In this document: positions 6,622-27,769 of the stretch, piece by piece | Layout: each line of letters begins with the position of its first letter | Position numbering within the stretch: the stretch's first letter is position 1 | Origin: Mantamonas sphyraenae STR306 | Lineage: Eukaryota; Protista; CRuMs | Assembly (NCBI GenBank): GCA_026936335.1 | Contig: JAPMXV010000023.1 | Span: 124,001 to 188,000 of the forward strand | DNA: 64,000 nt | Reading direction: 5' to 3' | Notes under the pieces: generated by a model | Databases searched by the model: none | What the model saw: only the letters and a program-made list of their open reading frames with translations | What the model was told of the DNA's origin: nothing | Position numbers and translations under genes: made by a program

Positions 6622-8523
<1,902 letters not shown>

Positions 8524-8790
8524 GCTGCTCGAGGTGCGTAGCGAGCGCCTGCGTGCGCGTCTGTAAACCAGGCGACGTGCGTATGGTGGCTCCCCCTCGA
8601 GCAGGGTAATCCTGACTCTGATGATGTGTGTCTGGTGCACATTGTGTGTGTGCACGAAACAGGCAGCAGCAAAACACAGCAACACCCCTTTCCTCAACCC
8701 CAACCCCACACCCCCCCCGCAACCTTTCCATCCCATGAATCCATGGGGCGGCAGCGAGGGGGTGTGGTGGGCGAGGGGAAAGCGATCGTT

Positions 8791-8870
8791 CCACCGTGCT
8801 TCGCATGACGCATGCTATTCCTGGGAAACGGCCGAATGTTATGGTCGCAGGACATGCTGACGGAGAGTGG
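8791..8870 (+). promoter_or_regulatory. SECIS element (type II) in the TrxR 3' UTR
   Basis: ATGAC 8805-8809 and TGAC 8858-8861 form the GA quartet; helix II GCATG/CATGC plus TCCTG/CAGGA; apical AAA then mini-helix CGGCCG/TGGTCG; lower pairing CCAC/GTGG and TTCG/CGGA. Confidence 0.75.
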
Positions 8871-8960
8871 ACGGAGTTGCGTTGGCCAGGTTTTGCATAG
8901 TGAACAATGGACAATGGCAATGGTGTACAGAAACCGAGTTGGGACTTGTCTTGGTGACCG

Positions 8961-10540
8961 CGACTGGGATTTGCCCTTGCCACTGCTGCCCTGGCTGTCG
9001 TCCACTGCCAGATTGAGCTCCATTGCGTGTGTGTGTTTGGTGTTGGGATGGGTTCAAAGGAGGGTGGGGGGGGGTGACGCAGGTGCTTGTTGGTCTGGGT
9101 GTGGCATCGCTGGCTCCGACCGACCCATCCCAAACACAAAACCACAGAGAAAGTAAGTTGCAGGCGCACGTATCGGTGCAATGGGAGGACAATGGACCTG
9201 TGCGCACCATGGGCATGCACATGACGGAGCTGGTATCCGTTTGCATGTGTGTGTGCGTGTGTGCAGTGCCGACTCGTGTGTACAGGCGGTCAGTCCGTTC
9301 TGGGAAAGAGGGCGGCTGGGTCGAAAATGCCCGCCGCAAGGGACACCGGAAGAGAACACTGACACGGAAAGCAATGTGTGTGTGTGTGCGTGTGTGTGTG
9401 TGTGTGTTCAGTGTCCAAGATCTCGTCTGAAGTGCTGCGAAGCTCGATCCGTGAGGTGCTGAACCCGGAGAAGAAGCGCAACTTGTGAGTTTTTTGCATG
9501 CGATGCGAGTCGACTTTTGCAAGTGGCTGTGCTTTTGAGGGGCACACACAGAGAGAAATGGAAAGTGCAATGGGACACAAGGGATGAGACATGCTGACAA
9601 ACGCGTGGATGGACACGACACATTGCAGCCTGGAGTCTGTTGAGCTGCAGGTTGGCCTGAAGAACTACGACATTGCGCGCGACAAGCGTTTCTCGGGCAA
9701 GGTGTCTGTGCCGCACCAGCCGCGCCCGCGCCCCAAGGTTCTGATCTTTGGTGACGTCAAGGCTTGCGACGCTGCCAAGGCTCTGGGCTACGACACGATG
9801 AACGCCGACGAGGTGAAGGGTGTGTTCAAGCAGAAGAAGCCGATCAAGAAGATTGTGCGCAAGTACGATTACTTCCTGGCGTCGAGCACGATGATCCGTA
9901 ACGTGTCGAAGAGCATGGGATCGTACCTGACCAAGGCAGGCAAGTTCCCCACTGTGCTGGGCAACAACGACGACCTGGAGGAGAAGATCGCCGAGGTGAG
10001 CGCTCAGGTGCAGTTCAAGCTGAAGAAGCTGTGTCTGGGAGTGTGCATTGGCCACCTGAACATGACGGAGGACCAGCTTGTGCGCAACATCGTCAAGGCT
10101 GTGAACTTCCTTGTGTCTCTGCTGAAGAAGCAGTGGCAGAACGTGGGTTCGCTGTACATCAAGAGCACGATGGGCCCCAGCTTCCAGATCTACTAAGGAG
10201 ATGGTGGAACGGCGGGAGGCTTGTTGTGCCACGGAGCTTGGTGTGCACTGCGTCGTAGTGCCCTTGTGTTTGACCCAAGGGAAGACGGAGCGCTGCTGGA
10301 AGGCGGCGAGGCTGTCGCAAGGGCGCAGTGATTTCTCGATATCAACTCGTGTCAACTCGTTATTCAGGCGTTGTGGAGGAGAGGCAATGAGTGCGTGTGT
10401 GGGTGTGGGCAATTGATTTCCATGAGTGTGGAGTGTGTACTCCTGCAAGGAGACCCGAGAGGCAGGAGGAGCACAACACACACCCCCGGTTCAGAAGAAA
10501 ATGGAAGCCACAGCGAGCACGTGCGCAAAACAGGCCAAAC
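8961..10540 (+). repeat. Inverted repeat 1, left arm (~1.58 kb): first 21 codons of DDX31, shared upstream region, complete RPL10A gene and its 3' flank
   Basis: Near-identical reverse complement of 17554-19132 with scattered SNPs and small indels. Confidence 0.95.
9152..10196 (+). CDS. RPL10A: 60S ribosomal protein uL1 (L10a), copy A; exons 9152 (A of ATG), 9412-9484, 9629-10196
   Basis: Spliced [39 protein letters not shown]...KAGKFP...NFLVSLLKKQWQNVGSLYIKSTMGP. Confidence 0.92.
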
Positions 10541-10572
10541 CAACGTAGGAGATAGGGTGACTGGTCTTGCAC

Positions 10573-12000
10573 ATGGATGTGTTGCATGAGAACGCAGTGC
10601 GGTACGAGCTCAATGAGATGATGGTGGAGGCGTTGCGTGGTGGGGATCTCGACTCGGCGTGCGCAAAGGCCAATGCGGTCGGATTGGACCGGTTGGAAGT
10701 TGGCCACTCGGAGTGTGTGGCTTTGGGATCTGTGTTGACGTCGCATCGGCTGAGGGTGAACTGCATTCACGTGGAAGTGGACGATTCGCAGTTGTCTGAT
10801 GCTGCGCAGGTGTTCAACGAGCTCGTTGCGGGGATTGCGGCCAACCCATCCGTGCTGACGCTTCGAGTGAGTGCCTATTCTCTGTCCAGTGTGCACGAGG
10901 GATGGAACGCATTGCTGGAGGGATGGAAAGCGGGAACGTGCCACCTGCGGGAACTTGTGTTGGGTGGTGTGCTTGACATCGACCAGTGGAGGGCGATAGC
11001 GGAGGGCCTGAGTGAGGGCACGCACACGTTGCAGAGACTGAGTGCGTCTGACTTGTGGATGGGCAGAACAAACGCAGAGAGGTTTGGCAGACTCCTGGCA
11101 GCAAACACGAGATTGCGACACCTCGACCTCACCGCGACGGGGTTGGATGACGTCGGTGTGGCAGCTCTGGGCAAAGGCCTGGCACAGAACAACACACTGC
11201 AGTCGTTGATGCTTTCACACAGTCGATTCCAAAGCGAAGGGCTGTTGGCGCTGGCAGAAGGGGTGCGCGAAAACACATCGCTGCGCCTGCTGGACATCCA
11301 CTTGGGCAAGTTTGAGAGTTTGGATGAGTTTGTGAATATGTGTGCAGAGAAGCACACGTTGCAGGTGACGGTGGGACAGTTCTCAGGGCCGGTGTGGCGT
11401 CGTCCCTTTGTCCCGCTGCCTCGTTTGCTGAGCATTGTCGAGAGCACACCGGTGAACGCGATGAGTTTGCCCCTGAAGAATCTGGAGATGTCACAGATGG
11501 AACGGCAGATTGCAGTTTTTGACGTGTGTTCGCGTGACGCCGACGATTTGCTGGAGATCTTGCTGGACGACGGCGTTTCCCCCGACACGCTTGTGAACCA
11601 AGGACTGGTCCCGGGTCACAGCACATGGTTCATGGTCACAGCGTTGGCACAAGCTGTGTGTGACGGACATGTGGCGGTGGCACGTCTCATGGTCGAACGA
11701 GGCGCATCTGTTCATCTGGGCAACCCCTCTGCGATGGAGTATTTGGAACGCATTGTGTGGAAGATTGGACGAGACGATGCGTGGCAAACCTGGCATTTCA
11801 TGCATGGTGACCACGTGGACGAGGCCATGGAGACGGCGTTGGCGATGAACATGGAAGAGCGTGCGGTGATGTTTGAGGCGGGCGGCATGGAGGATTACGT
11901 GCCCGAGGCACTGTGGAGCACACTCCCGGATGAGGTGATGGAACGGGTGGTCGATTGGATGGCCAAACAGGAACACCCGTTGGCGCAATGGCTGCAATGA
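10573..12000 (+). CDS. RI-like leucine-rich repeat + ankyrin-like protein with C-terminal F-box-like motif, paralogue A
   Basis: LRHLDLTATGLDDVGVAALGKGLAQNNTLQSLML repeats; TALAQAVCDGHVAVARLMVERGA; terminal LWSTLPDEVMERVVDW; no intron seen. Confidence 0.75.
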   Translation: MDVLHENAVRYELNEMMVEALRGGDLDSACAKANAVGLDRLEVGHSECVALGSVLTSHRLRVNCIHVEVDDSQLSDAAQVFNELVAGIAANPSVLTLRVSAYSLSSVHEGWNALLEGWKAGTCHLRELVLGGVLDIDQWRAIAEGLSEGTHTLQRLSASDLWMGRTNAERFGRLLAANTRLRHLDLTATGLDDVGVAALGKGLAQNNTLQSLMLSHSRFQSEGLLALAEGVRENTSLRLLDIHLGKFESLDEFVNMCAEKHTLQVTVGQFSGPVWRRPFVPLPRLLSIVESTPVNAMSLPLKNLEMSQMERQIAVFDVCSRDADDLLEILLDDGVSPDTLVNQGLVPGHSTWFMVTALAQAVCDGHVAVARLMVERGASVHLGNPSAMEYLERIVWKIGRDDAWQTWHFMHGDHVDEAMETALAMNMEERAVMFEAGGMEDYVPEALWSTLPDEVMERVVDWMAKQEHPLAQWLQ

Positions 12001-12031
12001 TGCGCCTCCTACGCCAGCAACACCATCAAAA

Positions 12032-12711
12032 ATGTCGCAGTCTGTGAAAGGTAGGCACATGGGAAGAGAATACATTAAGAAGGAAAGAGAGGGATGGAGA
12101 TGAAATACACATGCACATCTTGTTGCGGGCGTGTGCGTGTGTGTAGGAAGCACGGGGGAGGGGACTGACGCCCGGGCTGATCAAAATCTCTCTGGAACCC
12201 AGTGCCCCGCAACTTTGTCCTGCTTGAGGAGCTGGACGAGGGAACCAAGAGCTCGGGCGAGTTCTCCTACGGTCTGGACGACCAGGACGACACCAAGTTG
12301 TACAACTGGAACGGTTCGATCATCGGCCCTAGCAACGTGAGTGGGCGAAGGAGGCGGAGAAAGCGGGAGGGAAATTCGCCCAGGAAATCGGCGCAGTTCC
12401 GAGGGCGCCGCAGACGGAGCACTGACCCGCAGACACACACACAGACGGCGTTTGACAACCGTATCTACACACTGAACATCTTTTGCTCGGACAACTACCC
12501 GGAGGAGCCGCCCACGGTGACGTTTGTGACCAAGGTGAACATGAACTGCGTCAACTCGGACGGCAGCATCAACACCAAGAAGTTCAAGCTGCTGGGCAAC
12601 GACTGGACCGGTGACAAGCGCATGTTTGACGTGCTCAAGGGTCTTCGCGACGAGATGGCCTCTTCCAGCAACCGCAACCTGAGCCAACCTGACGAGTTTG
12701 AGACCTACTGA
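12032..12711 (+). CDS. MMS2: Ubiquitin-conjugating enzyme variant UEV1/MMS2; exons 12032-12050, 12203-12336, 12445-12711
   Basis: VPRNFVLLEELDEG, SYGL, WNGSIIGP, NRIYTL, FVTKVNMNCV; introns in phase. Confidence 0.92.
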
Positions 12712-12774
12712 TGAAAGTGACGATTTTGGCATCCATATGCATCCACTCCATTTGCTGGTTCATCGAGCCCACCC

Positions 12775-15260
12775 TCATCGCTTGCCACCGTGGTGCTTGC
12801 GCTTGCTGTGGTGCTTCTTCTTGTCCACCGTGCTGTCGTGGAAGATGCTCTCCTTCTTGGCCTGGACCACCTCGTCGTCCGTCAGGTCTTTCCTCTTGGC
12901 CGAGCTGCCCGACTTGGAGCTGGAGCTTGTGCTGCTTGCGCCTGCGCTGCTGCTGCTGTTGGAGCTGCTGTTGGAGCTGGAGCTGATCTTTGTGCTTCCC
13001 GCCTCCTCGTCGTCTTCACCACTCTGTGTGGTCGACACAATCATCTTGCCCTTGCCCTTGCCGCTCTTGTCGGCAACGAGGGAGTGTGTGAACACAGCCT
13101 TGTCGCCCGTGCCCACGGCGCTGATGACGCCGATGCCTCGCGTGCGACCCTCGCAAAACACAATCTTCTCGCCGACCTTGAGGAACTCGGGACGGTTGGT
13201 GAAGCGGAACTTGACACGTGTCTTGTCACCCGTGCGCAGGTACTCCTTGTCCATGCCCACAATGGAGGCAGCCTGGCGTACTGTGGCGCTGTGCACGACG
13301 GGCTGGTAGTTCAGGCGGATGGTGGTACTGTGGTGGAGAATGAGCACATCCGCCTCAAAGTCCATCGCACTCTGGATCTCCTCGTGGCCTACACCCAGCA
13401 TGACCATACCGCGGCGGATGCTACTGCGCTTGATGCGCTTCAGCGCAAAGCAGCACGACTGCCCCGCCGTCACCTGCTTCACCGCCATGCGCTGGTAATG
13501 GATGCTCTTGACGCTGGCCTTGACAAACTCGCCCGTGCCCGTGGGTCCCAACCACAGCGTGTCGTTGCTCTTCACCACACCCTGTGTCAGGATGCCCGAC
13601 ACCACCGTGCCCACACCGGTCACGTAAAAGTCGTCCGTGATGTAAAACTCGGCGGGCTTCTTGGCACGAGCGTCCCACTCGCGCCGTGCAGGCACGAGGT
13701 TGAGGAAGGAACGGACCAGGTCCAGGTTCTCACCCGTGACGTTGGACACCAGAAAGATGGGCACCACGCGGTTGTTGCAAATCTCCTTGGCGTACTTGAT
13801 GACATCATCCTCGTTCTTGACAATCACGGGCATCTTCTTGTCCGCTCCGGGCGACTTGAGGATGCGCACCAGCGTCTTGAGGTTGTCCTTGAACACGTGC
13901 TTGGGACAGATGTCAATCTTGGTCACCACGCACATCACCGGAATCTTCATCGCCAGCGCAATGCCCAGGTGCTCCTTTGTCATGCGCGTGATCCCATTGT
14001 TGGCTGCCATCATCAGCATGCAATAGTCCGGGATGTGGCCCGTCAGACCAGAGATGGTCGTCTTCAGATAGCGCTTGTGACCTGCCAGATCGATGAACGA
14101 CAGCACCTTTGCACTGTTGGCCACAATCTCGCTCCACGAGTAGTTGTGCAGCTGCGAGTAGTTGGTGACCTCGCCCTGGTTGTCAAACCCCAGGATTTGG
14201 TGGCTGATGGAACTCGTGCGGCCAGTCTCAATCTCGTGCGGGTGGTTAAACACCTGCGAGCGCGCCAGACCACGGCCGTTGTCCAGCTTGCCGCCCACAA
14301 GCACACCAATCAGTGTGCTCTTGCCACTGTCGACGTTACCTGCCACGGCAATGCGCAGATCCACACACGACTCGCCTGCAGCCGGGATGCGACGCACCAG
14401 ACACACGGCACTCTGGCCAGAATCGCCCTCACGACGCTTGACCACCTGCACGCCGGCACCCAGCTCAGCAGCCATGGCACGCAGCGTCTCCAGGCTGGAC
14501 TCCAACTCGTCTGCATCCAGGCCCTTCACGTGGCCGTCATCCTCCACGCCAATCTCGTAAATGGCCTCGCCCGATCCTTCCGCCAGTCGGAAGTTCATCT
14601 GCGTCACCAGACGCTCGAATCGAGCCTTGGAAGGCTTCAGGAACAGTTTGTACTCGGTGTTGCCCTCGTCGTCCTCTGCGCCCAGCTCGCTCACGTCATC
14701 CATCATGATGGAGTCTGTACGGAGTTGATGGGTTGGCCAGTGCGTTTCCGCAGAGGTAGCCCAACGCGGAGAGTGTGAAGGGTGTCAGGAGGTGCGGTGC
14801 AGGAGGAAAAGGCAGGAGGAAAGGCCCGGATTTTGAGAGGGAAGTTTCAGTTCTGTACGGGCTCCTGGGCGCCACAATGGCCTCAATGGCACTTGGTGTG
14901 CAACATACCTGGGATTTCAATCTCCACGTCATCGTCTGCCTCGTCGCCCGCGGCAAACTGGTCATCTTCGTCGTCGGAGGCGCGCTGCTCCTGCTGCTTG
15001 CTCTGGAACCTGCTGCTGCTGCTGCTGCTGCTGCTCTGGCTCTCGCTGCTGCTGCTGCTGCTGCTTGTTCCGGCCGAGCTCATGATCGTTGTTGTCTCAT
15101 CCTCCACCTGCTTGCCCTGCTTGGTGTTTGTGGAGCTGTTGTTGTCCTCGTTGCTGGTGGTTGTGTGCACGGTTGTGCTGCTGTTGTCGCTGTTGTTCAG
15201 CACAAGCTCGTCCACTGCATCCATGCTCGTGTTTCCAGAAAAGCCGTTGTCGTCTGCCAT
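12775..15260 (-). CDS. GTPBP2: Translational GTPase GTPBP2 (GTPBP1/2 family); intron 14715-14908
   Basis: EGNTEYKL, LVTQMNFRLAEGSGEAIYEIGVEDDG, GNVDSGKST, HEIETGRTSS, DLAGH, TKID; low-complexity first exon joins in phase. Confidence 0.88.
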
Positions 15261-15951
15261 CTAAACTCACACGTGGACGACGAATAAATTAAAACAAAAA
15301 TTGGAGTGTGTGAGAAGCGGGGGACGGTTCGGCTTGCTCTCGCGCTCGCAAACTCACGTGGCTCAGCACAAGTACACTCTGGTTGTTCATCGTGGGTGGT
15401 CGTTTGTTTGCTGTGTTTGGTACATGTGCAAGGGGCAGCGTGAGTTGTGTGCTCGAGGCATTCTGTGACTGGTGTGCAGTTGTGGCCTCGTTCCCATTTC
15501 CGTGGAAATCGAAACTCGGATTTCGGCAAAGAGCAATTTTCTGATGACGGTGGCGCCCACGTCTACCCGCTTCACACGGCCCCGGACACTCGCATGCGTT
15601 CTTGCGTCCATGGATGAGGCCTGGGGACAACGTTGCGAGATGCATGCATGCAGTGGGAGGCCACAGAAGCAGCCAGAAGGCAGTGTTTTGTGCAAACGCA
15701 GTGGCGGCGGAAAGAAGCGTACCTTCAAAAAGAGTTGTTGATTCAATCACAGAACTATCCTCAGGATCATACACAATGTGGGTGGGTCTTCACGATGGGT
15801 TGGTTGTTGTGAGATTTACGGGAAGAATCACCAAGGAGATGCGATTGGTTGCGAATCAGGTTGGGTGGACCTGGGCGGTCGTGGCATCGAGGTTTTGAAG
15901 TGCACACAAAGGCAAATCGTTTAATCTACAACAACGACGCTGTTCGATGCT

Positions 15952-17463
15952 TCACAAAGTCTCAGGAAGGGCATATTGTCCGAATGGGAGGTGGAACCTG
16001 GCTACCCAATCGACCACTCGTTCCATCACCTCATCCGGGAGTGTGCTCCACAGTGCCTGGGGCACATATTCTTCCATGCCACCAGCTTCGAACATCACAT
16101 CACGCTCTTCAATGTTCATGGTGAGTGCGGTTTCGACAGCAAGGTCAAGCGACGGCGGATTCGCTCCGTGCCACGCACGCCACGGCGTATCTTCCTTGGA
16201 CGCCACAGCCCACACTATCCGCTCCATGTGCTCGTATGCACTTGGCACCCCAAGGTTTGCCCGTGCACCACGATCAAGCAGCAACTGGGCCACATCTGGA
16301 TGTTGTGCACCAGCCACAACCATCGCCAATGCTGTCGAAATCTTGGCCGATTGCACATGACCATGCACACGTGTGCTCCGGTTGCTTTGATACTTGATTT
16401 CGCTGGTGTCTACCAGCGCATCCGGCGATGTGCCCTGATCCAACAACTCGCGCACCTCTTCCAGCCTGCCGTCATCACAAGCAAACCGCATCCTGCTCCA
16501 ATTCTCCATCATTTGTGTTTGCCTGTCAGAGAGATACTGCAGCTGCAGCGTTCGGCCAACGAGGAGCAGATCGGGCCTGATTTCTTGCAGCCTGCTCTCC
16601 ACATCTCTCGTGGTGCCTGCGATGTCCCCAAACATCGTGAGGGCGAACCCTGCCAAGACCAACAGTCCAGTGTTGCCAATGCAAAGCTCCAGAAACGCTG
16701 CCATGCCTTCGGCGCTCGCGTGGCTCCGCAGAATGCTCAGTTCCCGCAGTTCATCATTGGTGTGCAGTGCACGACCCAGCGCCTGCAACCCATCGTCTGA
16801 AAACTTGTTCCAGTCCAACTCCAACATTTGCAGTTTGTCATTCGTGGCCAACGCCTTGCTGAGGAGCACCAAATCGTCGTCTTGCAAACCACACGAACGC
16901 AGCTGCAAGTGACAAAGGAGACACTCCGGGTCTCCGAGTGCAGCTGCCACTGCCACAACAACCTCTTTGGCCATGTCCTTGCACTCCAAGCTGATGCTGT
17001 TGAGAGTGCGCAGCTCGCCTTTTCCCACCGCCGCAAACAGCTCCACCAGCGCCTCAGTCGTCACACGAGCAGAGATGGCGAGCTTGCGCAGGTTGCACGT
17101 CCCATCTCGCATTCCTTGGCACAGCACAGACAAGCCCCGTTCCCCATCCAACCGGCTTTGCGCCGAAAACGTGAACGTGAACACAAACGGGTTTTCGGAA
17201 ATGGCCTCGGCAACGTCGTTGAAGATGGCTCGCACCGTGTTCTGGCCCTTTGCCACCATGAACACATCCAATTCGTTCAAACGAAGACCATTTTTCAGTG
17301 CAACACTCATTGTGCGTGCGAGCAACCCACTGATGCGCAAACTCCTGCATCCCGACGCCTCCACCTGCCTCCTCACCTCCTCCTCGTCCTGCGAGCTCAG
17401 AGCGTCCGATATTCCACGCATGGAATCTCTCAAACGGTCGAGTTTGGCAGCGAGACTCCCCAT
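15952..17463 (-). CDS. RI-like leucine-rich repeat + ankyrin-like protein with C-terminal F-box-like motif, paralogue B (start uncertain)
   Basis: LCHLQLRSCGLQDDDLVLLSKALATNDKLQMLEL; TALAMVVAGAQHPDVAQLLLDRGA; C-terminal ~45 aa nearly identical to paralogue A. Confidence 0.75.
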   Translation of the reverse strand: MGSLAAKLDRLRDSMRGISDALSSQDEEEVRRQVEASGCRSLRISGLLARTMSVALKNGLRLNELDVFMVAKGQNTVRAIFNDVAEAISENPFVFTFTFSAQSRLDGERGLSVLCQGMRDGTCNLRKLAISARVTTEALVELFAAVGKGELRTLNSISLECKDMAKEVVVAVAAALGDPECLLCHLQLRSCGLQDDDLVLLSKALATNDKLQMLELDWNKFSDDGLQALGRALHTNDELRELSILRSHASAEGMAAFLELCIGNTGLLVLAGFALTMFGDIAGTTRDVESRLQEIRPDLLLVGRTLQLQYLSDRQTQMMENWSRMRFACDDGRLEEVRELLDQGTSPDALVDTSEIKYQSNRSTRVHGHVQSAKISTALAMVVAGAQHPDVAQLLLDRGARANLGVPSAYEHMERIVWAVASKEDTPWRAWHGANPPSLDLAVETALTMNIEERDVMFEAGGMEEYVPQALWSTLPDEVMERVVDWVARFHLPFGQYALPETL

Positions 17464-17553
17464 TGCGAGCGTTGCGGTTTCCGACTCGCCTTCCACCGAC
17501 AACGTTGGATTGGCTGGTGCAGTTGCCTCGCTGAACTGATTCCCCACACATTA

Positions 17554-19132
17554 GTTTGGCCTGTTTTGCGCACGTGCTCGCTGTGGCTTCCATTTTCTTC
17601 TGAACCGGGTGTGTGTGTTGTGCTCCTCCTGCCTCTCGGGTCTCCTTGCAGGATTACACACTCCACACTCATGGAAATCAATTGCCCACACCCACACACG
17701 CACTCATTGCCTCTCCTCCACAACGCCTGAATAACGAGTTGACACGAGTTGATATCGAGTAATCACTGCGCCCTTGCGACAGCCTCGCCGCCTTCCAGCA
17801 GCGCTCCGTCTTCCCTTGGGTCAAACACAAGGGCACTACGACGCAGTGCACACCAAGCTCCGTGGCACAACAAGCCTCCCGCCCTTCCACCATCTCCTTA
17901 GTAGATCTGGAAGCTGGGGCCCATCGTGCTCTTGATGTACAGCGAACCCACGTTCTGCCACTGCTTCTTCAGCAGAGACACAAGGAAGTTCACAGCCTTG
18001 ACGATGTTGCGCACAAGCTGGTCCTCCGTCATGTTCAGGTGGCCAATGCACACTCCCAGACACAGCTTCTTCAGCTTGAACTGCACCTGAGCGCTCACCT
18101 CGGCGATCTTCTCCTCCAGGTCGTCGTTGTTGCCCAGCACAGTGGGGAACTTGCCTGCCTTGGTCAGGTACGATCCCATGCTCTTCGACACGTTACGGAT
18201 CATCGTGCTCGACGCAAGGAAGTAATCGTACTTGCGCACAATCTTCTTGATCGGCTTCTTCTGCTTGAACACACCCTTCACCTCGTCGGCGTTCATCGTG
18301 TCGTAGCCCAGAGCCTTGGCAGCGTCGCAAGCCTTGACGTCACCAAAGATCAGAACCTTGGGGCGCGGGCGCGGCTGGTGCGGCACAGACACCTTGCCCG
18401 AGAAACGCTTGTCGCGCGCAATGTCGTAGTTCTTCAGGCCAACCTGCAGCTCAACAGACTCCAGGCTGCAATGTGTCGTGTCCATCCACGCGTTTGTCAG
18501 CATGTCTCATCCCTTGTGTCCCCTTGCACTTTCCATTTCTCTCTGTGTGTGCCCCTCAAAAGCACAGCCACTTGCAAAAGTCGACCCGCATCGCATGCAA
18601 AAAACTCACAAGTTGCGCTTCTTCTCCGGGTTCAGCACCTCACGGATCGAGCTTCGCAGCACTTCAGACGAGATCTTGGACACTGAACACACACACGCAC
18701 ACACGCACACACACACACATTGCTTTCCGTGTCAGTGTTCTCTTCCGGCGTCCCTTGCGGCGGGCATTTTCGACCCAGCCGCCCTCTTTCCCAGAACGGA
18801 CTGACCGCCTGTACACACGAGTCGACACTGCACACACACACACACACATACAAACGGATACCAGCTCCGTCACGTGCATGCCCATGGTGCGCACAGGTCC
18901 ATTGTCCTCTCATTGCACCGATACGTGCGCCTGCAACTTACTTTCTCTGTGGTTTTGTGTTTGGGATGGGTCGGTCGGAGCCAGCGATGCCACACCCAGA
19001 CCAACAAGCACCTGCGTCACCCCCCCCACCCTCCTTTGAACCCATCCCAACACCAAACACACACACGCAATGGAGCTCAATCTGGCAGTGGACGACAGCC
19101 AGGGCAGCAGTGGCAAGGGCAAATCCCAGTCG
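17554..19132 (-). repeat. Inverted repeat 1, right arm
   Basis: Reverse complement of 8961-10540; continues into the intact DDX31 gene. Confidence 0.95.
17898..18942 (-). CDS. RPL10A: 60S ribosomal protein uL1 (L10a), copy B
   Basis: Same protein as copy A (one synonymous CTG/CTT difference noted); same split start codon and intron layout. Confidence 0.92.
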
Positions 19133-21860
19133 TCGCGTGACAAGTGGATGCAGAAGCATAGGAAACGGCAAGGTCGGACAAAGATGCTGGAAAAACGAAA
19201 GAAAAAACGAGAGGAACGGGCAGCACGGGCGCCACGCAAACCCAAGGCCCAGGAAAAGCCAAAGGGGCCAAAGCCCGAACGGAAATCCGCGGTGACTACA
19301 ACACGGCCTGGCAAACCCGACGCCGGGGTGTTCAACGCCAACGTGAATGTGGAAATAGGCACACGTGCGCCGTTGGCTGACCAGAGCGCATCGTGGAAGC
19401 AAGAGGTGGCAAACAAGCAGCAGGCGGCACGCCAACGTGTGCGTGCAGCTCGGCCGAGCTCGGGAAATGCAGACGAGACGTCCGGCGGCGGCAACAGCAA
19501 GCGAGGCAGCAAGAAGAAGCCCAAGCAGAAGAAGAAGGGCGACCGACCGGTAAGTGGATGGATGGGAGGGAGCAAACAAGGCCAATCAGCGATACTGACG
19601 CGTACCATGCCCCTGCCACAAAAAGATGGCTGTGCTGAAAGAGCCAATCCCGAGCACAGTGGAATCTGCGCCTCCGGTGTCCGTCTACTCTGCACACGCC
19701 CTGCTGCAACAGCAGGTGGAACACACATCGCATCTGCAACAGGCCAGCAGGCGACACAACACCACAGACAATCGTCATGGCAACAACACGACCACAACCA
19801 GCACCACAACGTCGACATCCACAAAACCCACCACTGCACCCAAGGCACGCGGTGTACAGACCAGCGACAGTGCATTTGGCCAATTGGGATTGGATGCGGC
19901 TGTGTGTGAGGCGGTGGAAGAGTATCTGGGACATTCCGAGCCGACGGAGATCCAACGCAAGGCAATCCCGGAGATGTTGGCGGGCAAGGATGTGGTCATC
20001 CGTGCACGCACGGGTTCGGGCAAGACGCTAGCATTCCTGCTGCCTGTGTTCCACGTGCTGAGCACCATGGAGCCGCGGCTGACGCGTGCGGCGGGTACAA
20101 AGGCGCTGATCTTGACACCGACACGCGAACTGGCCATCCAGATTTTCGACCAGTGTCAAAAGCTGGTGCGCCGGTTCCACTGGCTGGTGCCGGGGTACAT
20201 TATTGGGGGCGAAAAGATGAAGAGCGAAAAGGCACGTCTGCGCAAGGGGGTCAATGTGCTGGTGGCCACGCCCGGCCGTTTGTTGGATCATCTGCAGCAC
20301 ACAAAGAGCTTCTACGTCCACGACCTGAGTATGCTGGTGTTGGACGAGGCCGACCGATTGTTGGACATGGGGTTTGAGCGCACGCTGTTGGACATCACCC
20401 AGCTGTTGCCCAGGCCCACCACCCGCCAGAATGTCCTGTGTTCTGCCACTGCCACAGAGAAGCTGGAGAAGCTCCAGCACTTTTCCTTGCGCCAGAACTA
20501 TGCCCGGGTCGGCTTTGACAACCTGGGCAAGGACGGCCGCGAGGAAGAGGCTGAGGAGGAGAAACAGGTGGTGGACATGGAGGACGACGAGGTGGAGGCA
20601 GGGCACACGGAGGCATCCTCCTCCTCCTCCTCCACTATGTCTTCCGACAACGGCGCACAGAAGAAGGCCGGGAAGAAGCTGGCAGGCGACGGGATGGAAT
20701 TGGAGCAGTTTGCAGTGCCCGCCGAATTGAAACAGTACGTGGTGGAGGTACCAGGACGCCTGCGGCTGGCTTCGCTGATTGGCTTCATGCGACACACGGA
20801 AAAGAATTATGGGGAAAAGTGCAAAATGATTGTGTTTCTGAGCAGCCGCGACTCGGTGGACTTTCTGCACATGCTGCTGACGCGTGTGACGGACATGTCG
20901 TCTGCACTGCTGCGTGCCAAACTGGACCTGGATGCCCTCGACGCAGACATGGATCTGGGTGCGCTGAGCGACGACATGCAGGCGCTTGCACGCGGCGATT
21001 TGCCGCCGCTGGTGAGCATGCAAGTGTTTCGCCTGCACGGTGCAATGGGCCAGGCCGAACGCACTGCCTCCTTTGTCGGGTATGCACAAAGCAAGGCGTC
21101 GGTGCTGCTGTGCACCGACGTCGCCGCACGCGGTCTGGACTTGCCCTTTGTGAACTGGATTGTGCAGTACGACCCGCCGGGAGATGTGGCGTCGTATCTG
21201 CATCGCATCGGACGCACAGCACGTGCAGGCCGGTCGGGCAACGCAATGCTCTTCCTCATGCCCTCTGAAATGGAGTTTGGCACCATGCTTAAGGAGCAAT
21301 CGCACATGCAGATGAAGGTGGTGGAACACGACGAATGGCTCCCTGCCCTCGCCAGCGACGGCTCCCTCGACGCCGACGAGGCCGTGTCCAAGTTTAATCA
21401 CCATCTGCAAACAGCCACATCCAGCGACAAGGAGCTGCATCGACACGCCATGTCCGCCTTTCAGGCCTACGTACGTGCGTACGCCACCTATCCCAAGAGT
21501 GTCAAGCACATTTTCCATCCGCGACGTCTGCATACGGGCCATCTGGCAAAGGCGTTTGCCCTGTGGGATGCCCCATCGACCGTGGGCACCAAGAAGCGCA
21601 AGTATGACGACAGCAAGGAGGACGGTGACGATGGCAAGGGCAAGAACACGAGCAAATCCAAGGTCAAGTTTGCAGGCACACGCATCGCCTTTGACAGCAA
21701 GGGCAAGGCCAGGAAATTGGACAAGTGGCAGCCCAAGATGCTCATGGCAGGCGGAGTGCCCATGCGGGCAGGCCAGCGAGGTGATGCTGACGACGATGAC
21801 GACAGCAGCGACGACGAGGACAACCACCACCGCAAACGGCAGAGGAAAAGCAAGCGATGA
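19070..21860 (+). CDS. DDX31: DEAD-box RNA helicase DDX31/DBP7; intron 19550-19625
   Basis: Q motif PTEIQ, TGSGKT, PTRELA, GGEKMKSEKARLRKG, DEAD, SAT, TDVAARGLD, HRIGRTAR, HTGHLAKAFAL. Confidence 0.9.
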
Positions 21861-21899
21861 CGGTGAACGTGAACGATGTGGGACAATAGGGTGGGAAGG

Positions 21900-23059
21900 G
21901 AATACATGTATTTTGTGAGCTGTGGTGACAGTGTGCAACCAACATCATCACTCGCTCAGGGCAATCTCCCGAAACTCCCTGCGCATGGCCACCACAAAGT
22001 GTGAAAAGTTGTTGCTCTTGTTCAGCTCCTTGGCCATGCTGCTCAACTTGCGTCCCCCAATGCCCGGTGAGCACTCGTCCACGTAGTACTGGTCGTCAAT
22101 GTCCACGTGCACCGTGAACAAGAACTGCCGCTCCGCATCCTTCGGATCCACATGAGTAAACACAAAGCGCAGATAATCCTGCTGCAGCACCTCAAACGAC
22201 AGCTTCAGCCTGTCCTCGTAGAAGAACAGACCCTCCTGCGCGTCCTTGACCCGTGTGTCCAGCTCACTCTTTGCTTGTTCCACCTCTGTGTGTGTGTGAC
22301 CCCGTGTGGTGTGGTTCGTACACGACACTTGTTGTGTCAGTCCACCCATCCATGGATCTCTCTCTCTCCCTCTCTCTGTGGGGTCATCACGGGTCTCACT
22401 CTGGTCTTTGCTGTGCCTCCAAGCCTGTGGATCCGACACCCACTCCACCCCTCCTCCCACACGTTCCCACATGCCTCCCCTCATCCTTATCCCACATGCA
22501 AACCCGTTCCACACTCCATACACACCCCTTCCCTCCCGCCTCTGTCACCCTCGCCCTCTCCATCCCAAAAATCCGTCAAACGCCCGCCATCTCCGTCTCC
22601 CGCCAAACGGTCACCCGTCACACACACCCCCTGCCCCCGCTCCCTCTCTCCACATCCATCCACACCCATACTGCAACTCACCCTTGGTCTTCTTCTCCAC
22701 CCCCTTCTTCTCCTCGTGCACCTTCATCTTCATCGCCGTGCACTCTTCCGTCGCCGTCTTCTTGTCAGCCTGCGCCTGCTCGATCTGCTGCTGACACGCG
22801 TCGATCTCCTCGTTCTCCTGCTGCAACTGGTTCTGCACCTGCTGTGCCAGACTCTCCAACTGGCTGTGTTGCTTCTCCATGGCTCGAAGTGACTGCTGGC
22901 CGTCCTCCATGTACATGGTGTGCGCCTCCACGGTCTGCTGAACCTCGTCCAGCTTGGCATCGGCCCAGGTGTCAAACTGCTCCTGAAAGTCAGACACACG
23001 TGTCTGAAACGACTGCATGTGGTTGATGTGCTGGCGAGCAAGCGATACACTCATGGTTG
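21900..23059 (-). repeat. Inverted repeat 2, left arm (SPC25 gene)
   Basis: Reverse complement of 25055-~26225; exons near identical, intron with indels; outer edge decays gradually. Confidence 0.93.
21948..23054 (-). CDS. SPC25: Kinetochore NDC80-complex subunit Spc25, copy A (one ~400 nt intron)
   Basis: N-terminal coiled coil then FYEDRLKLSF...LRFVFTHVDPKDAERQFLFTV...YYVDECSP...LNKSNNFSHFVVAMRREF. Confidence 0.85.
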
Positions 23060-23132
23060 GTGGTGCAATGATGTGTGTGATTTGATTTTGATCTGCCAGC
23101 GCACTCCCTTCTCCCTGTGCTTCATCTGTGCT

Positions 23133-25006
23133 TCATCCAGCCCAATCGGCACTCTTGAGGCCATGCGGCTGCAGGAAAACCTCCTTTTGCAGCTCCTCTT
23201 CGATGCGCTTGTTCTCCTCCTCGATCTGTTGGCGGAAACGCTCCCATTCCTCGCGGATGAGCTCCTCCTCGTGCTCTGCCTCTGCCTGCTTCTGCTGAAT
23301 CTGCGAGTTGAGCTGACGGCGATACTCTGCGTCTGCCCGCACCCTCTCTGCTGCCATGGCCTCAGCACGTTCGGCGTCCTCCTGGGCCATGCGCTCCAGT
23401 TTGGCAGCCTCTGCACGCGCCTCCTCCTGCTCCACTTTGTTCTGCTCCAGTTGGAAGGCCAGCTGTCGCTCGCGCTCGTCAAACACCTCTTTCATGAGAC
23501 GGTTGCGAGCCTCCTGCTCTGCGCTCCAGCGATCCATGCGCTTCTGCCACTCGCGCTCCTGCTCCTCGAAACGCAGGCGGTTCAGGTACGCCTCCATGCG
23601 TGCCTCCTCTTCACGCACCTTGGCCAGGTGTCGCTTGTACGCCTGTGCCTCCATGCGCAGGTACTGCTTCATCGCATCTGCCGCCTCCTGCTCCTCCTTT
23701 TGCTCCTGCAGCACCTCGGCAATGAATGCCAGATCCCGTTCGCGCTCCTCGTCCTTGCGCTTCTGTTCCAGAGCCCGCTTCTTGATGTTGTACTCAAACA
23801 GGTCCTTCTTCATGTCGCGGTCGCGGCGAATCTGTTCCTGTTCACGCAGCTTGGCCTGCTCCTCTTCGATGGCCCACTTCTTCTTCCACAGCTCCATCTC
23901 CTCCTCCTGCAGTCGCTTCTCTTCCGCCTTCTTTGCCTTCACTTCCTCCACCTGCGAGTCCAGGAACTCCTTGATCTTCTTGTCCTCCAGAGCACGCGCC
24001 TTTTCGCGCCGCACGTTCTCCTTTTCAATTGCTTCGTAGTACTCCTGCATCCGCTGTTCCTCTTTCCTTTCGCCTGTGTATGTGTATGTGTTTGTATGTG
24101 CGGAGTGTGAGAGAGTGTGTGTGTGTGTGTGTGTATCCACGTGCAGGTGTGGTTTCGGGTGTGAGCGCTTTCCGCTGCTTCTGCAGCCCCTCCCTTTCAG
24201 GGTTCTCACTCCATGATGCCTGCCACTCCCGTTCCACAAACATACGCTGCTCTTCTTCCTCGCGGATCTGGAGCTTTTCGCGCCGTTGTTGGGCGCGCAC
24301 CTGATGCACGTGCTTCTCCAGCGCCTCCGACTCCCGCCCGCGCAGCTCGTCGCAATCGTTGCGCCAGCGTCGCGCCGCGTTTTCTTCGGCCATCTGTGCA
24401 CGCAGCGCCTCGCGCTTGTCCCGCAGCTCCTGTGCACGTGCGCGCATCTCGTCCACGCGTTGTTCTGTGAGAAGGGGTGAGGCACGTGAGTACGGTGTCC
24501 GTGGGGTCCAGCACAGGAGTGCGCTCTGGTTTCGCGCTAGCTCGACGATTGCCAACCGCCCTTGTGTTCGGCCTCTCTCCCTCCACTGCGCTCTCCAACA
24601 CACCTGTCGTTGATTCACGCTGAGCCAGCTCGTTCTTAAACTGTCGATCCTCGTTGCTCAGCAAGTCGGCGAGGCTGTGTGTGGCATGGGACGCGGGTCA
24701 GGTGATTTGCAACGGTCGAAAAAGCAAAATGGGGTGGGCCCCTGCCATGGTCTGGCATCCCCTCACAAAGCAGGGTTCAACGTACGCGCGTCGACGAGCA
24801 TTCAGCTCACGCTGGCTCTGTCGTTCCAGGCGCTTGTAGTGACGGTTGACGGTGTTCTGCTTGATCTTGCGGTTGGTGCTCTTCTCCCACGACACCACAT
24901 GCAGCTGTCGAGCAGCCTCTTGCTTGGTCTGCTCAAACACAGCGCGGCGGTCCTCCTCCGCACGTCGCTTCAAAATCAGATAATCCGAGGGCGGCTTGCG
25001 AGACAT
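23133..25006 (-). CDS. CFAP53: Trichohyalin-plectin-homology (TPH) coiled-coil ciliary protein, CFAP53-like, multi-exon
   Basis: RELNARRRALADLLSNEDRQFKNEL, RWRNDCDELR, EWQKRMDRWSAEQEARNRLMKEVFDERERQ; GT-AG introns. Confidence 0.7.
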
Positions 25007-25054
25007 CGGTGTGTGTGTGTGTTTGGCAGCGCCGGCGGCACAAAGTCAAAACCG

Positions 25055-26225
25055 CAACCATGAGTGTATCGCTTGCTCGCCAGCACATCAACCACATGCA
25101 GTCGTTTCAGACACGTGTGTCTGACTTTCAGGAGCAGTTTGACACCTGGGCCGATGCCAAACTGGACGAGGTTCAGCAGACCGTGGAGGCGCACACCATG
25201 TACATGGAGGACGGCCAGCAGTCACTTCGAGCCATGGAGAAGCAACACAGCCAGTTGGAGAGTCTGGCACAGCAGGTGCAGAACCAGTTGCAGCAGGAGA
25301 ACGAGGAGATCGACGCGTGTCAGCAGCAGATCGAGGAGGCGCAGGCTGACAAGAAGACGGCGACGGAAGAGTGCACGGCGATGAAGATGAAGGTGCACGA
25401 GGAGAAGAAGGGGGTGGAGAAGAAGACCAAGGGTGAGTTGCAGTATGGGTGTGGGTGGATGTGGAGAGAGGGAGCGGGGGCAGGGGAGGAAGGTGGGGGC
25501 CGTGTGTGACGGGTGACCGTTTGGCGGGAGACGGAGATGGCGGGCGTTTGACGGATTTTTGGGATGGAGAGGGTGAGGGTGACAGAGACGGGAGGGAAGG
25601 GGTGTGTATGGAGTGTGGGATGGGTTTGCATGTGGGATAAGGATGAGGGGAGGCATGTGGGAACGTGTGGGAGGAGTGTGGAGCGGGTGTCGGATCCACA
25701 GGCTTGGAGGCACAGCAAAGACCAGAGTGAGACCCGTGATGACCCCACAGAGAGAGAGAGAAAGAGAGATCCATGGATGGGTGGACTGACACAACAAGGT
25801 CGTGTACGAACCACACCACACGGTGTCACACACACACAGAGGTGGAACAAGCAAAGAGTGAGCTGGACACACGGGTCAAGGACGCGCAGGAGGGTCTGTT
25901 CTTCTACGAGGACAGGCTGAAGCTGTCGTTTGAGGTGCTGCAGCAGGATTATCTGCGCTTTGTGTTTACTCATGTGGATCCGAAGGATGCGGAGCGGCAG
26001 TTCTTGTTCACGGTGCACGTGGACATTGACGACCAGTACTACGTGGACGAGTGCTCACCGGGCATTGGGGGACGCAAGTTGAGCAGCATGGCCAAGGAGC
26101 TGAACAAGAGCAACAACTTTTCACACTTTGTGGTGGCCATGCGCAGGGAGTTTCGGGAGATTGCCCTGAGCGAGTGATGATGTTGGTTGCACACTGTCCA
26201 CCACAGCTCCCACAAAGTACATATG
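25055..26225 (+). repeat. Inverted repeat 2, right arm (SPC25 gene)
   Basis: Reverse complement of ~21900-23059; identity starts about 5 nt before the ATG. Confidence 0.93.
25060..26177 (+). CDS. SPC25: Kinetochore subunit Spc25, copy B; intron 25433-25839
   Basis: Same as copy A apart from a Q/E change and a synonymous AAG/AAA. Confidence 0.85.
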
Positions 26226-26287
26226 TCCATTGCCCACCACGCCCATCATTGTTGCAAAGCGTCGAGGCACCCATCCAAATCCCGACG

Positions 26288-27769
26288 ATGGCGGACGACT
26301 TTCCCACGTCGTACATCGACGAGTTTGGCAACGAGGTGCACATTCACATGGGCGAAGAATACGACGTGTTTGACAGCCACGACGCAGACTACGATCTGGC
26401 TGGCTACCAGGGCACTCTGATGGACGACATGCCTCGCGACTGCGTGGTCTTTGTGGGCCACGAAGATGCAGGCGTCATGGAGCTCGTGCGAGCCATGTAC
26501 GGCGAAGGAACCTCGCCAGAGGATGCTCAGATCGACAATGTCCACGAGTATCTGCAACACAGCAGCAGCCTACATCTGAGCACCAAATATTACCAGGCAG
26601 ACATCAAGCTGCAGGTTGTGTCTCCTTTTGTCAACGCCGACCTCGTCGACGACTTTGACTTTTTCACAGGCGTGCTGGGAACCACCTGCCAGGCCATTGT
26701 GCTTGTGTATGACCCGCTTCGTGTACGTTGAACAGTCCAGAGTGGACCACACACCCGCTGAATTCCCCTCTTTCCAACCCTCCGTTCCTCACCCTCCCCC
26801 ACCCCACACATACACTCACGCACACGCAACCGCACACAGCCAGAGACGTTGGACGTGTGCACACAATGGGCCGACTTTGTCAGCATGTACGTCCCATCCA
26901 TCCGGCTGCTGGTGGCCAATTTCCACAACAACGACGAAGCTGTGCATGCCGACCTGAGCCCTGCCAACGACTGGTGCATGTCCCTGGGCTATGACATTGG
27001 CTTTGAACTCGTCGAGTTTGCCCACCCGCACCACCTCCTCCCTGCCGAGCAGCAGCAACACATGGCCATGCACGAAAAGGTCGGCGCCGAACGCGTTGTT
27101 CAGGCCCTGGAAACCTGCATCGACTGGCCCGGCATCGAACTCGGATCCGGTGTCCAGGCACCATCGGGTATGGCTGGATTTATGATGGGTGGTGGCATGG
27201 GTGATGGGATACTGGGTGGGAGCAGCAGCAGCAGCAGCAGCAGCAGTAGCAGCAGCTCTTCCTCGTCCTCCTCATCGGCCGACGCTGCCACTACAGACAA
27301 GGCCGTGATTGTGGAGGGTGGTGAGGAGAAGCCCAGTGAAGCAGAGGGTGACAAGACGCAGGAGGCAACCCCCACGTCAGAGGAGACCACGAAGCAGTTT
27401 GCCACAGCCGACGAGATGGCAAAGAAGATCGAAAGCGACCTGGCTGGTGACATGGCAGCATTGGGTGGAGGGGCAGCCGGAGGCGTGCCCTCAGGCGTTG
27501 AGGCTATGTTTGCCGCCCTTTTTGGAGCGGAGGAAGGCGACGACGACGACGAACCAAACGAGGAGGACATCGAGAACTTTGAGCGTGCCATGGCCCTCAT
27601 GATGCAGATGAAACGTGAGGCTGCCGATTTGCCCGACGATGTGCGCCGCCAGCGTGCTGCAGACGTCGCTCTCAGCCTGTACAAAGCGTTGGGCGTTGAC
27701 GGCGATCTGAGCGACGATGATGAGGAGGGGCAGCAGGCGACAAACACAGAAACTGAAGACAAGGCATAG
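26288..27769 (+). CDS. AAGAB: Alpha/gamma-adaptin-binding protein p34 (AAGAB/Irc6-like), one intron near 26724-26839
   Basis: LSTKYYQADI, QAIVLVYD, GAERVVQALETCIDWP, C-terminal LPDDVRRQRAADVA. Confidence 0.7.

Follow-up and report, generated by a model that had tools for sequence, protein, structure and literature searches.

An inverted repeat carrying RPL10A around two diverged leucine-rich repeat genes in Mantamonas sphyraenae: probably a passive palindromic duplication rather than a switch

The stretch of the genome of Mantamonas sphyraenae analysed in this work (the window: 64 kb, positions 124001-188000 of contig C23) contains an inverted repeat, each arm of which bears a complete gene for the ribosomal protein RPL10A, and which encloses 7 kb of DNA with two diverged leucine-rich repeat (LRR) genes, LRR-A and LRR-B, at its inner edges. 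Mantamonas is a deep-branching eukaryote, a marine flagellate of the CRuMs. The question raised by this locus is whether the enclosed segment is inverted in a regulated manner, as a switch between the two LRR genes, or whether the whole is the passive product of duplication. Passive origins, taken jointly (an old palindrome or a younger duplication), were considered highly probable; the specific proposal of a palindromic segmental duplication in two layers, in which an old palindrome was kept alike in its RPL10A part by arm-to-arm gene conversion, was considered evenly balanced between right and wrong.

The two arms were reverse complements of each other with 98.9% identity (repeat search, MAFFT and BLAST were concordant), measured 1586 and 1585 nt and were separated by a spacer of 7001 nt. 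A preliminary description of this DNA, made from the sequence, had reported near-identical reverse-complement arms with a full RPL10A gene in each, and this was confirmed by the identity found and by the Ribosomal_L1 match of both copies; the inner limits it gave (10540 and 17554) marked the end of the last perfect run, and six further positions with two mismatches extend the arms to the limits shown in Table 1. The arm sequence was found exactly twice in the whole genome (25,061,354 bases in 78 contigs), and the two genes in the arms were its only copies of cytosolic RPL10A. The window contained no repeats of at least 100 nt other than the RPL10A inverted repeat, a second inverted repeat described below and a 121-nt patch in the LRR genes, so the RPL10A repeat is not due to chance.

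Seventeen differences between the arms (16 substitutions and 1 indel) were present in the MAFFT alignment, and their distribution follows constraint, which is a point in favour of the old palindrome: 7 were located in RPL10A intron 1 (259 nt), 2 in intron 2 (144 nt) and 6 in the 3' flank (350 nt), vs. a single one, synonymous (9878/18216), in the 640 nt of coding sequence. The 5' 192 nt of the arm had no substitutions and the only indel, in a G-run at 9066. Divergence was thus 1.4-2.7% in non-coding DNA, the coding sequence being near-identical. The substitutions were also sorted by type along the arm: the first eight (9184-9508) were transitions, the next six (9571-10484) transversions, and the last two (10541 and 10544) transitions. 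These are few substitutions, and errors from the polishing of a diploid repeat may have caused the pattern.

LRR-A begins 27 nt and LRR-B 85 nt inside the respective arm ends, in mirror positions and both facing inward, and the 350 nt upstream of each gene are contained in the arms. The proteins shared 35% of their amino acids from end to end (E 3e-64), and were reciprocal best matches in the genome (204 bits vs. 112 and 90 for the next). A maximum-likelihood tree built from the 13 best full-length family members placed them as sisters with 99/99 support, their terminal branches being long (1.9 and 2.8 changes per site). The earlier claim of two paralogous, strongly diverged, inward-pointing LRR genes with a common upstream region of about 350 bp therefore holds. 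Outside the C-terminus, the codon matched at only about 40% of the identical residues, so that synonymous sites are saturated. Since neither gene has another relative nearly as close as its sister, the simplest origin of the pair would be a local inverted duplication of DNA containing the LRR gene, and the coexistence of 98.9% identical arms with LRR divergence of this order would fit homogenisation of the RPL10A part.

The direction of the duplication may be read from the outer ends of the arms. An open reading frame (ORF) on the forward strand (19070-19909), with a Lys-rich N-terminus, lies upstream of the ORF of a DDX31-type helicase and overlaps it; it begins 63 nt inside the right arm and exits the arm. 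The right arm continues into DDX31 coding sequence and the left arm holds only these 63 nt, so the right arm represents the parental context and the left arm the derived copy, the outer junction of which is a derived breakpoint. This junction was abrupt: the alignment stops there, about 440 nt past the stop codon of the thioredoxin reductase (TrxR) gene. In the old-palindrome model, the 63 nt of DDX31 coding start, the bidirectional promoter, RPL10A and the LRR gene would have been copied in inverted orientation across the UEV1-GTPBP1 segment, the copy landing just downstream of TrxR and the right side being parental, as its arm continues into DDX31. The palindrome formed in this way would have measured about 3 kb in each arm and about 4 kb in the spacer. 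Subsequently the LRR copies, members of a fast-evolving family of more than 100 genes, would have escaped homogenisation and diverged to 35% identity, their heterology acting as an inner barrier to conversion, and the outer 1.59 kb would have been held 98.9% alike through repeated arm-to-arm gene conversion. The geometry further shows that the 7-kb middle could be inverted by homologous recombination of one arm with the other, giving isomers that would be functionally silent.

The strength of the old-palindrome model is that it explains the mirror positions of the sister paralogues and their common upstream DNA without coincidence. Several observations weigh against it. The differences between the arms showed no clear patchiness, and the GC content of the arms was not raised (0.56 vs. 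about 0.59 for the window). At the inner arm edge identity falls from 99% to unalignable within a few bases, and the N-terminal 60 amino acids of the LRR proteins, which adjoin the arms, were the most diverged part (17-26% identity); slow inward erosion of a converted arm would give the opposite gradient. A patch encoding the conserved C-terminal domain of LRR-A and LRR-B, which includes a 40-nt perfect run, was considered as proof of arm-to-arm conversion and rejected: 22 of 29 codons were the same in this pair, which ranked 4th of 90 pairs, and unlinked members of the family, on other contigs, reached 20 of 24 and 22 of 27. Strong family-wide constraint explains a patch of such ordinary rank, which therefore gives no independent sign of conversion. 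There is also a single genome and no outgroup, so that concerted evolution is not directly demonstrable. A serious competitor, though one we hold to be somewhat improbable, is a history of two events, an ancient inverted duplication of the LRR gene followed by a much younger duplication of the RPL10A block (about 2% neutral divergence), for which no conversion is needed. The younger event could have been an inversion with one staggered break, from an ancestral order TrxR, LRR-B, ..., LRR-A, RPL10A, DDX31, or a template switch by which a copy was inserted in inverted orientation between TrxR and LRR-A. In favour of this history, the arms end sharply on both sides, identity is uniformly high in coding and non-coding DNA, the outer junction interrupts a coding sequence in the manner of a breakpoint, and the non-coding divergence beside near-identical coding sequence is that of a young duplicate under purifying selection; the step from 99% to unalignable, next to the region where the LRR genes have diverged most, is also better explained. 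Staggered-break inversions that leave inverted gene duplicates, and the reuse of breakpoints, are documented (PMC1885836). The cost of a younger duplication is that its inner junction would have to land by coincidence at the mirror position, just upstream of a sister paralogue (a chance that we estimate at roughly 1 in 7, counting nearby intergenic sites), with the upstream region of one LRR gene swapped at -27 or -85 for exactly that of its sister. The earlier proposal that the original inverted duplication took in the LRR gene is thus supported as the simplest origin of the LRR pair, and for the RPL10A block a younger separate duplication fits too. Likewise, the proposal that conversion or inversion kept the RPL10A part identical while the LRR part diverged agrees with the contrast between arms and saturated paralogues, a contrast that the younger duplication also explains.

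A programmed flip-flop switch, in which regulated inversion would alternate the LRR variant expressed, as at the mating-type (MAT) loci of Ogataea and Komagataella, was considered very improbable. What suggests it is geometry alone: the segment between the repeat arms has a diverged paralogue at either end, much as the invertible segment of these yeasts has two alternative genes. However, in the yeasts the cassette exposed to centromeric or telomeric repression depends on orientation, and switching is induced (PMC5720833), whereas the DNA upstream of the Mantamonas end genes is identical whichever way the segment lies: the 350 nt common to both LRR genes would be carried along on inversion, with no change of promoter or neighbour. 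Each arm holds the whole RPL10A gene, its promoter and the LRR upstream region, and a flip leaves the sequence context of every gene unchanged for at least 1.6 kb; flips would therefore be functionally silent. There was no sign at the locus of a silencing neighbourhood of the Ogataea type; the two contig ends are no less than 133 kb and 45 kb away, and no silencing region is known there. No recombinase gene, as the preliminary description had also remarked, was found across 7-22 kb of the window (ORFs and Pfam), a stretch occupied by ordinary genes, and a similar architecture exists 2.8 kb away around an unrelated TPH-domain gene. The switching function, which that description itself called speculative, thus finds no support, and its expectation that recombination between the arms would exchange the LRR variant beside TrxR or DDX31 is correct as regards the geometry of inversion but does not extend to gene context within 1.6 kb. 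An assembly artefact (false duplication of one RPL10A locus, or a misjoined heterozygous inversion) is barely credible. According to the assembly passages of the genome paper, this organism is diploid and the FALCON assembly (25.06 Mb, 78 contigs, GC 59.19%) was built from PacBio RSII reads with an N50 of 11,048 bp and about 106x coverage, and polished with Racon and Pilon (PMC10492846). Diploidy itself leaves room for such an error, as do the polishing short reads, which are not uniquely placeable in 1.6-kb repeats; the list of differences may therefore hold errors, above all the indel in the G-run, which is the sole indel and could be a polishing error. On the other side, the arms differ at 16 substitution sites, different unique genes are joined to each arm on both sides, the diverged LRR paralogues imply an old mirror structure, and the read N50 is 7 times the arm length; with 106x coverage, this makes an artefact unlikely.

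Among known systems, the closest parallel is the flip/flop region of Saccharomyces cerevisiae chromosome XIV, where a homogenised 4-kb gene-bearing inverted repeat re-inverts a 24-kb block over evolutionary time, with an orientation that is stable on laboratory timescales and no known regulatory role (Salzberg et al. 2022, PMC9731477). As in Mantamonas, a gene-bearing inverted repeat surrounds a block of ordinary genes; in the yeast the arms are continually homogenised and the genes of the repeat belong to a fast-evolving, often duplicating family. In contrast, the Mantamonas arms, at 1.6 vs. 4 kb, are shorter and their gene encodes a ribosomal protein; the fast-evolving genes are located just inside the arms and have diverged. 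The two orientations and within-species homogenisation of the yeast were shown across strains and species, whereas the Mantamonas locus was analysed in one genome. The passages of the genome paper that concern related Mantamonas species describe only transcriptomes for them (PMC10492846).

The staggered-break inversions of Drosophila (Ranz et al. 2007, PMC1885836) are similar in having inverted copies of once-unique, gene-bearing sequence at the ends of a segment, with abrupt junctions, and their duplicates, of up to about 1.9 kb, are similar in size to the Mantamonas arms. Unlike in Mantamonas, where the copies are intact and 98.9% identical and the enclosed segment is only 7 kb, the Drosophila events were established with outgroups, and most of their duplicates have decayed, to about 88% identity and often to loss of function. 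Sex-chromosome palindromes (PMC8327919, PMC8981503) also have gene-bearing arms of about 99% identity, a unique spacer and a sharp arm/spacer boundary, but the mammalian arms span 10 kb to megabases, are located on sex chromosomes and carry testis genes; a signature of GC-biased conversion has been shown in them, and none was seen in the Mantamonas arms. Long-term homogenisation of gene-bearing inverted repeats is known from yeast (PMC9731477) and from primate X chromosomes (PMC8327919).

The features of the locus are summarized in Table 1.

Table 1. Position, strand and content of the features of the RPL10A inverted repeat, the enclosed segment and the flanking genes (numbering of the window).
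Feature	Position	Strand	Content or evidence
TrxR	7144..8517		Left of the left arm; Pfam-confirmed
Left arm, derived copy	8961..10546	+	63-nt DDX31 5' coding fragment, RPL10A/DDX31 bidirectional promoter, whole RPL10A, 350 nt of 3' flank
Duplicated start (21 codons) of the DDX31-side ORF	8961..9023	-	Identical to 19070-19132 (+); truncated at the arm end, faces the TrxR 3' region
RPL10A, left copy	9152..10196	+	Exon 1 ends 9152, exon 2 9412-9484, exon 3 9629-10196
LRR-A, 475 aa	10573..12000	+	RNI/NLR-type leucine-rich repeat, short ankyrin-like segment, conserved C-terminal helical domain
LRR-A patch	11845..11965	+	88% nt identity to the reverse complement of 15999-16119 in LRR-B; encodes the conserved C-terminal domain
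UEV1/MMS2-type ubiquitin E2 variant	12202..12711	+	Pfam UQ_con E 5e-10; PDB Mms2/UBE2V2 E 1e-15 to 1e-19
GTPBP1/GTPBP2-family translational GTPase	12775..14706	-	Pfam GTP_EFTU, D2, D3; PDB GTP-binding protein 1 E 3e-166
Ser/Asp-rich 125-aa ORF, doubtful gene	14883..15260	-	Weak low-complexity Pfam matches only
LRR-B, 503 aa	15952..17463	-	Sister paralogue of LRR-A
Right arm, parental copy	17548..19132	-	Continuous with the DDX31 gene
RPL10A, right copy	17898..18942	-	Exon 3 protein identical to the left copy
DDX31-type helicase ORF	19626..21860		Right of the right arm; Pfam-confirmed

RPL10A had three exons with canonical splice sites, read from the sequence, and introns opening with GTAAGT and GTGAGT; exons 1 and 2 were likewise read from the sequence, each exon being examined singly. 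Exon 3, a 201-aa ORF that is the same in both arms, matched Pfam Ribosomal_L1 (E 6.8e-44). The start codon is apparently split by intron 1 as A|TG, exon 1 ending in A (9152) and exon 2 starting with TG TCC AAG (9412), alike in both arms. The end of the TrxR ORF (8509-8523) reads ...GC, then TGA, GGA and TAA, corresponding to the Gly-Cys-selenocysteine-Gly end typical of selenoprotein thioredoxin reductases. Rfam gave no match at E 0.1 or better within 8000-27000, either to a selenocysteine insertion sequence (SECIS) element or to RNA genes in the arms such as intronic small nucleolar RNAs. Between the LRR genes, the UEV1 and GTPBP2 genes named in the preliminary description were recovered by Pfam and PDB matches, the GTPase being of the GTPBP1 family with a PDB match to GTPBP1; the UEV1/MMS2 ORF probably includes an intron read through in frame.

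LRR-A matched Pfam LRR_6 above the cut-off (E 8e-6), and LRR-B had no LRR_6 match above it. The AlphaFold model of LRR-A had a mean predicted local distance difference test score (pLDDT) of 70.5, with values of 70-90 for residues 1-265 and 46-60 in the C-terminal part; Foldseek searches with this model gave ribonuclease inhibitor and NLRP3 at E of about 1e-7, and residues 1-265, with their alternation of strand and helix, are predicted to form a horseshoe of the ribonuclease-inhibitor/NLR type. As for the ankyrin portion of the earlier “LRR-ANK” label, a short ankyrin-like segment was present in the model and the Ank matches in Pfam remained below the cut-off. The C-terminal domain of the family, of about 70 amino acids (11743-11997 in LRR-A; 15955-16230 in LRR-B), had 31 invariant columns among the 13 members and a low-confidence structural model, and matched no Pfam family at E up to 1. 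An F-box identity, the label it had received in the preliminary description, was rejected: no F-box, PRANC or SOCS family was found by Pfam at E up to 1 in either C-terminus. A word-based protein search that scored the 8000 most word-sharing candidates gave no relatives of LRR-A outside this genome at E 1e-10 or better, an absence of little weight.

The LRR family produced several hundred matches in the genome, from well over 100 genes, many of them in tandem arrays; long arrays were located in contigs C69 (280-316 kb), C29 (11-67 kb), C73 (168-194 kb) and C76 (133-162 kb). At least eight contigs also had a minus-strand member at about 4.0-4.3 kb from the contig start (C18:4115-4336, C22:4061-4279, C9:4097-4312, C68:4026-4241, C4:4120-4338, C30:4072-4281, C19:4075-4284 and C60:4035-4235), and about ten members were located some 4 kb from contig ends. 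A family member at such a near-fixed distance from the contig start looks like a conserved subtelomeric gene. TTAGGG repeats were present at contig ends among those listed for this genome.

The window contained a second gene-bearing inverted repeat (21890-23059 and 25055-26238), which starts 30 nt past the DDX31 stop codon, so that two such repeats occur in 64 kb. Its core (21927-23059 and 25055-26198) consists of arms of about 1.13 kb with approximately 98.5% identity, each with a SPC25 gene (Pfam Spindle_Spc25, E 2e-21), around a 2-kb spacer with one TPH-domain (CFAP53-like) gene. The outer fringe of these arms, some 40 nt in length, contained 2 substitutions and 4 indels and directly bordered a perfect block of 374 nt. 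Such a pattern would be left by a homogenised core whose edge escaped homogenisation, which would be a point for the old palindrome; the fringe could alternatively stem from error-prone DNA synthesis when the original junction was formed.

By itself, the RPL10A locus is a structural variant of an ordinary kind, a small gene-bearing inverted repeat that doubles the sole RPL10A gene of this organism, and its value is that of a clean, dated-looking example in which near-identical arms stand beside saturated sister paralogues. The term-matched passages of the genome paper contain nothing on inverted duplications, both occurrences of “inverted” in them referring to microscopes (PMC10492846). A broader reading, tentative and on balance unlikely, is that the locus is one case of an undescribed genome-wide habit, in which kb-scale gene-bearing inverted duplications often arise around segments of 2-10 kb, are kept about 99% alike by conversion and are occasionally flipped. 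If this were true, such repeats could last until their inner genes become new members of fast-evolving families such as the LRR family, and orientation could differ between haplotypes or isolates. A census of repeats together with their orientation in long reads could show duplication, conversion and inversion shaping a compact CRuMs genome.

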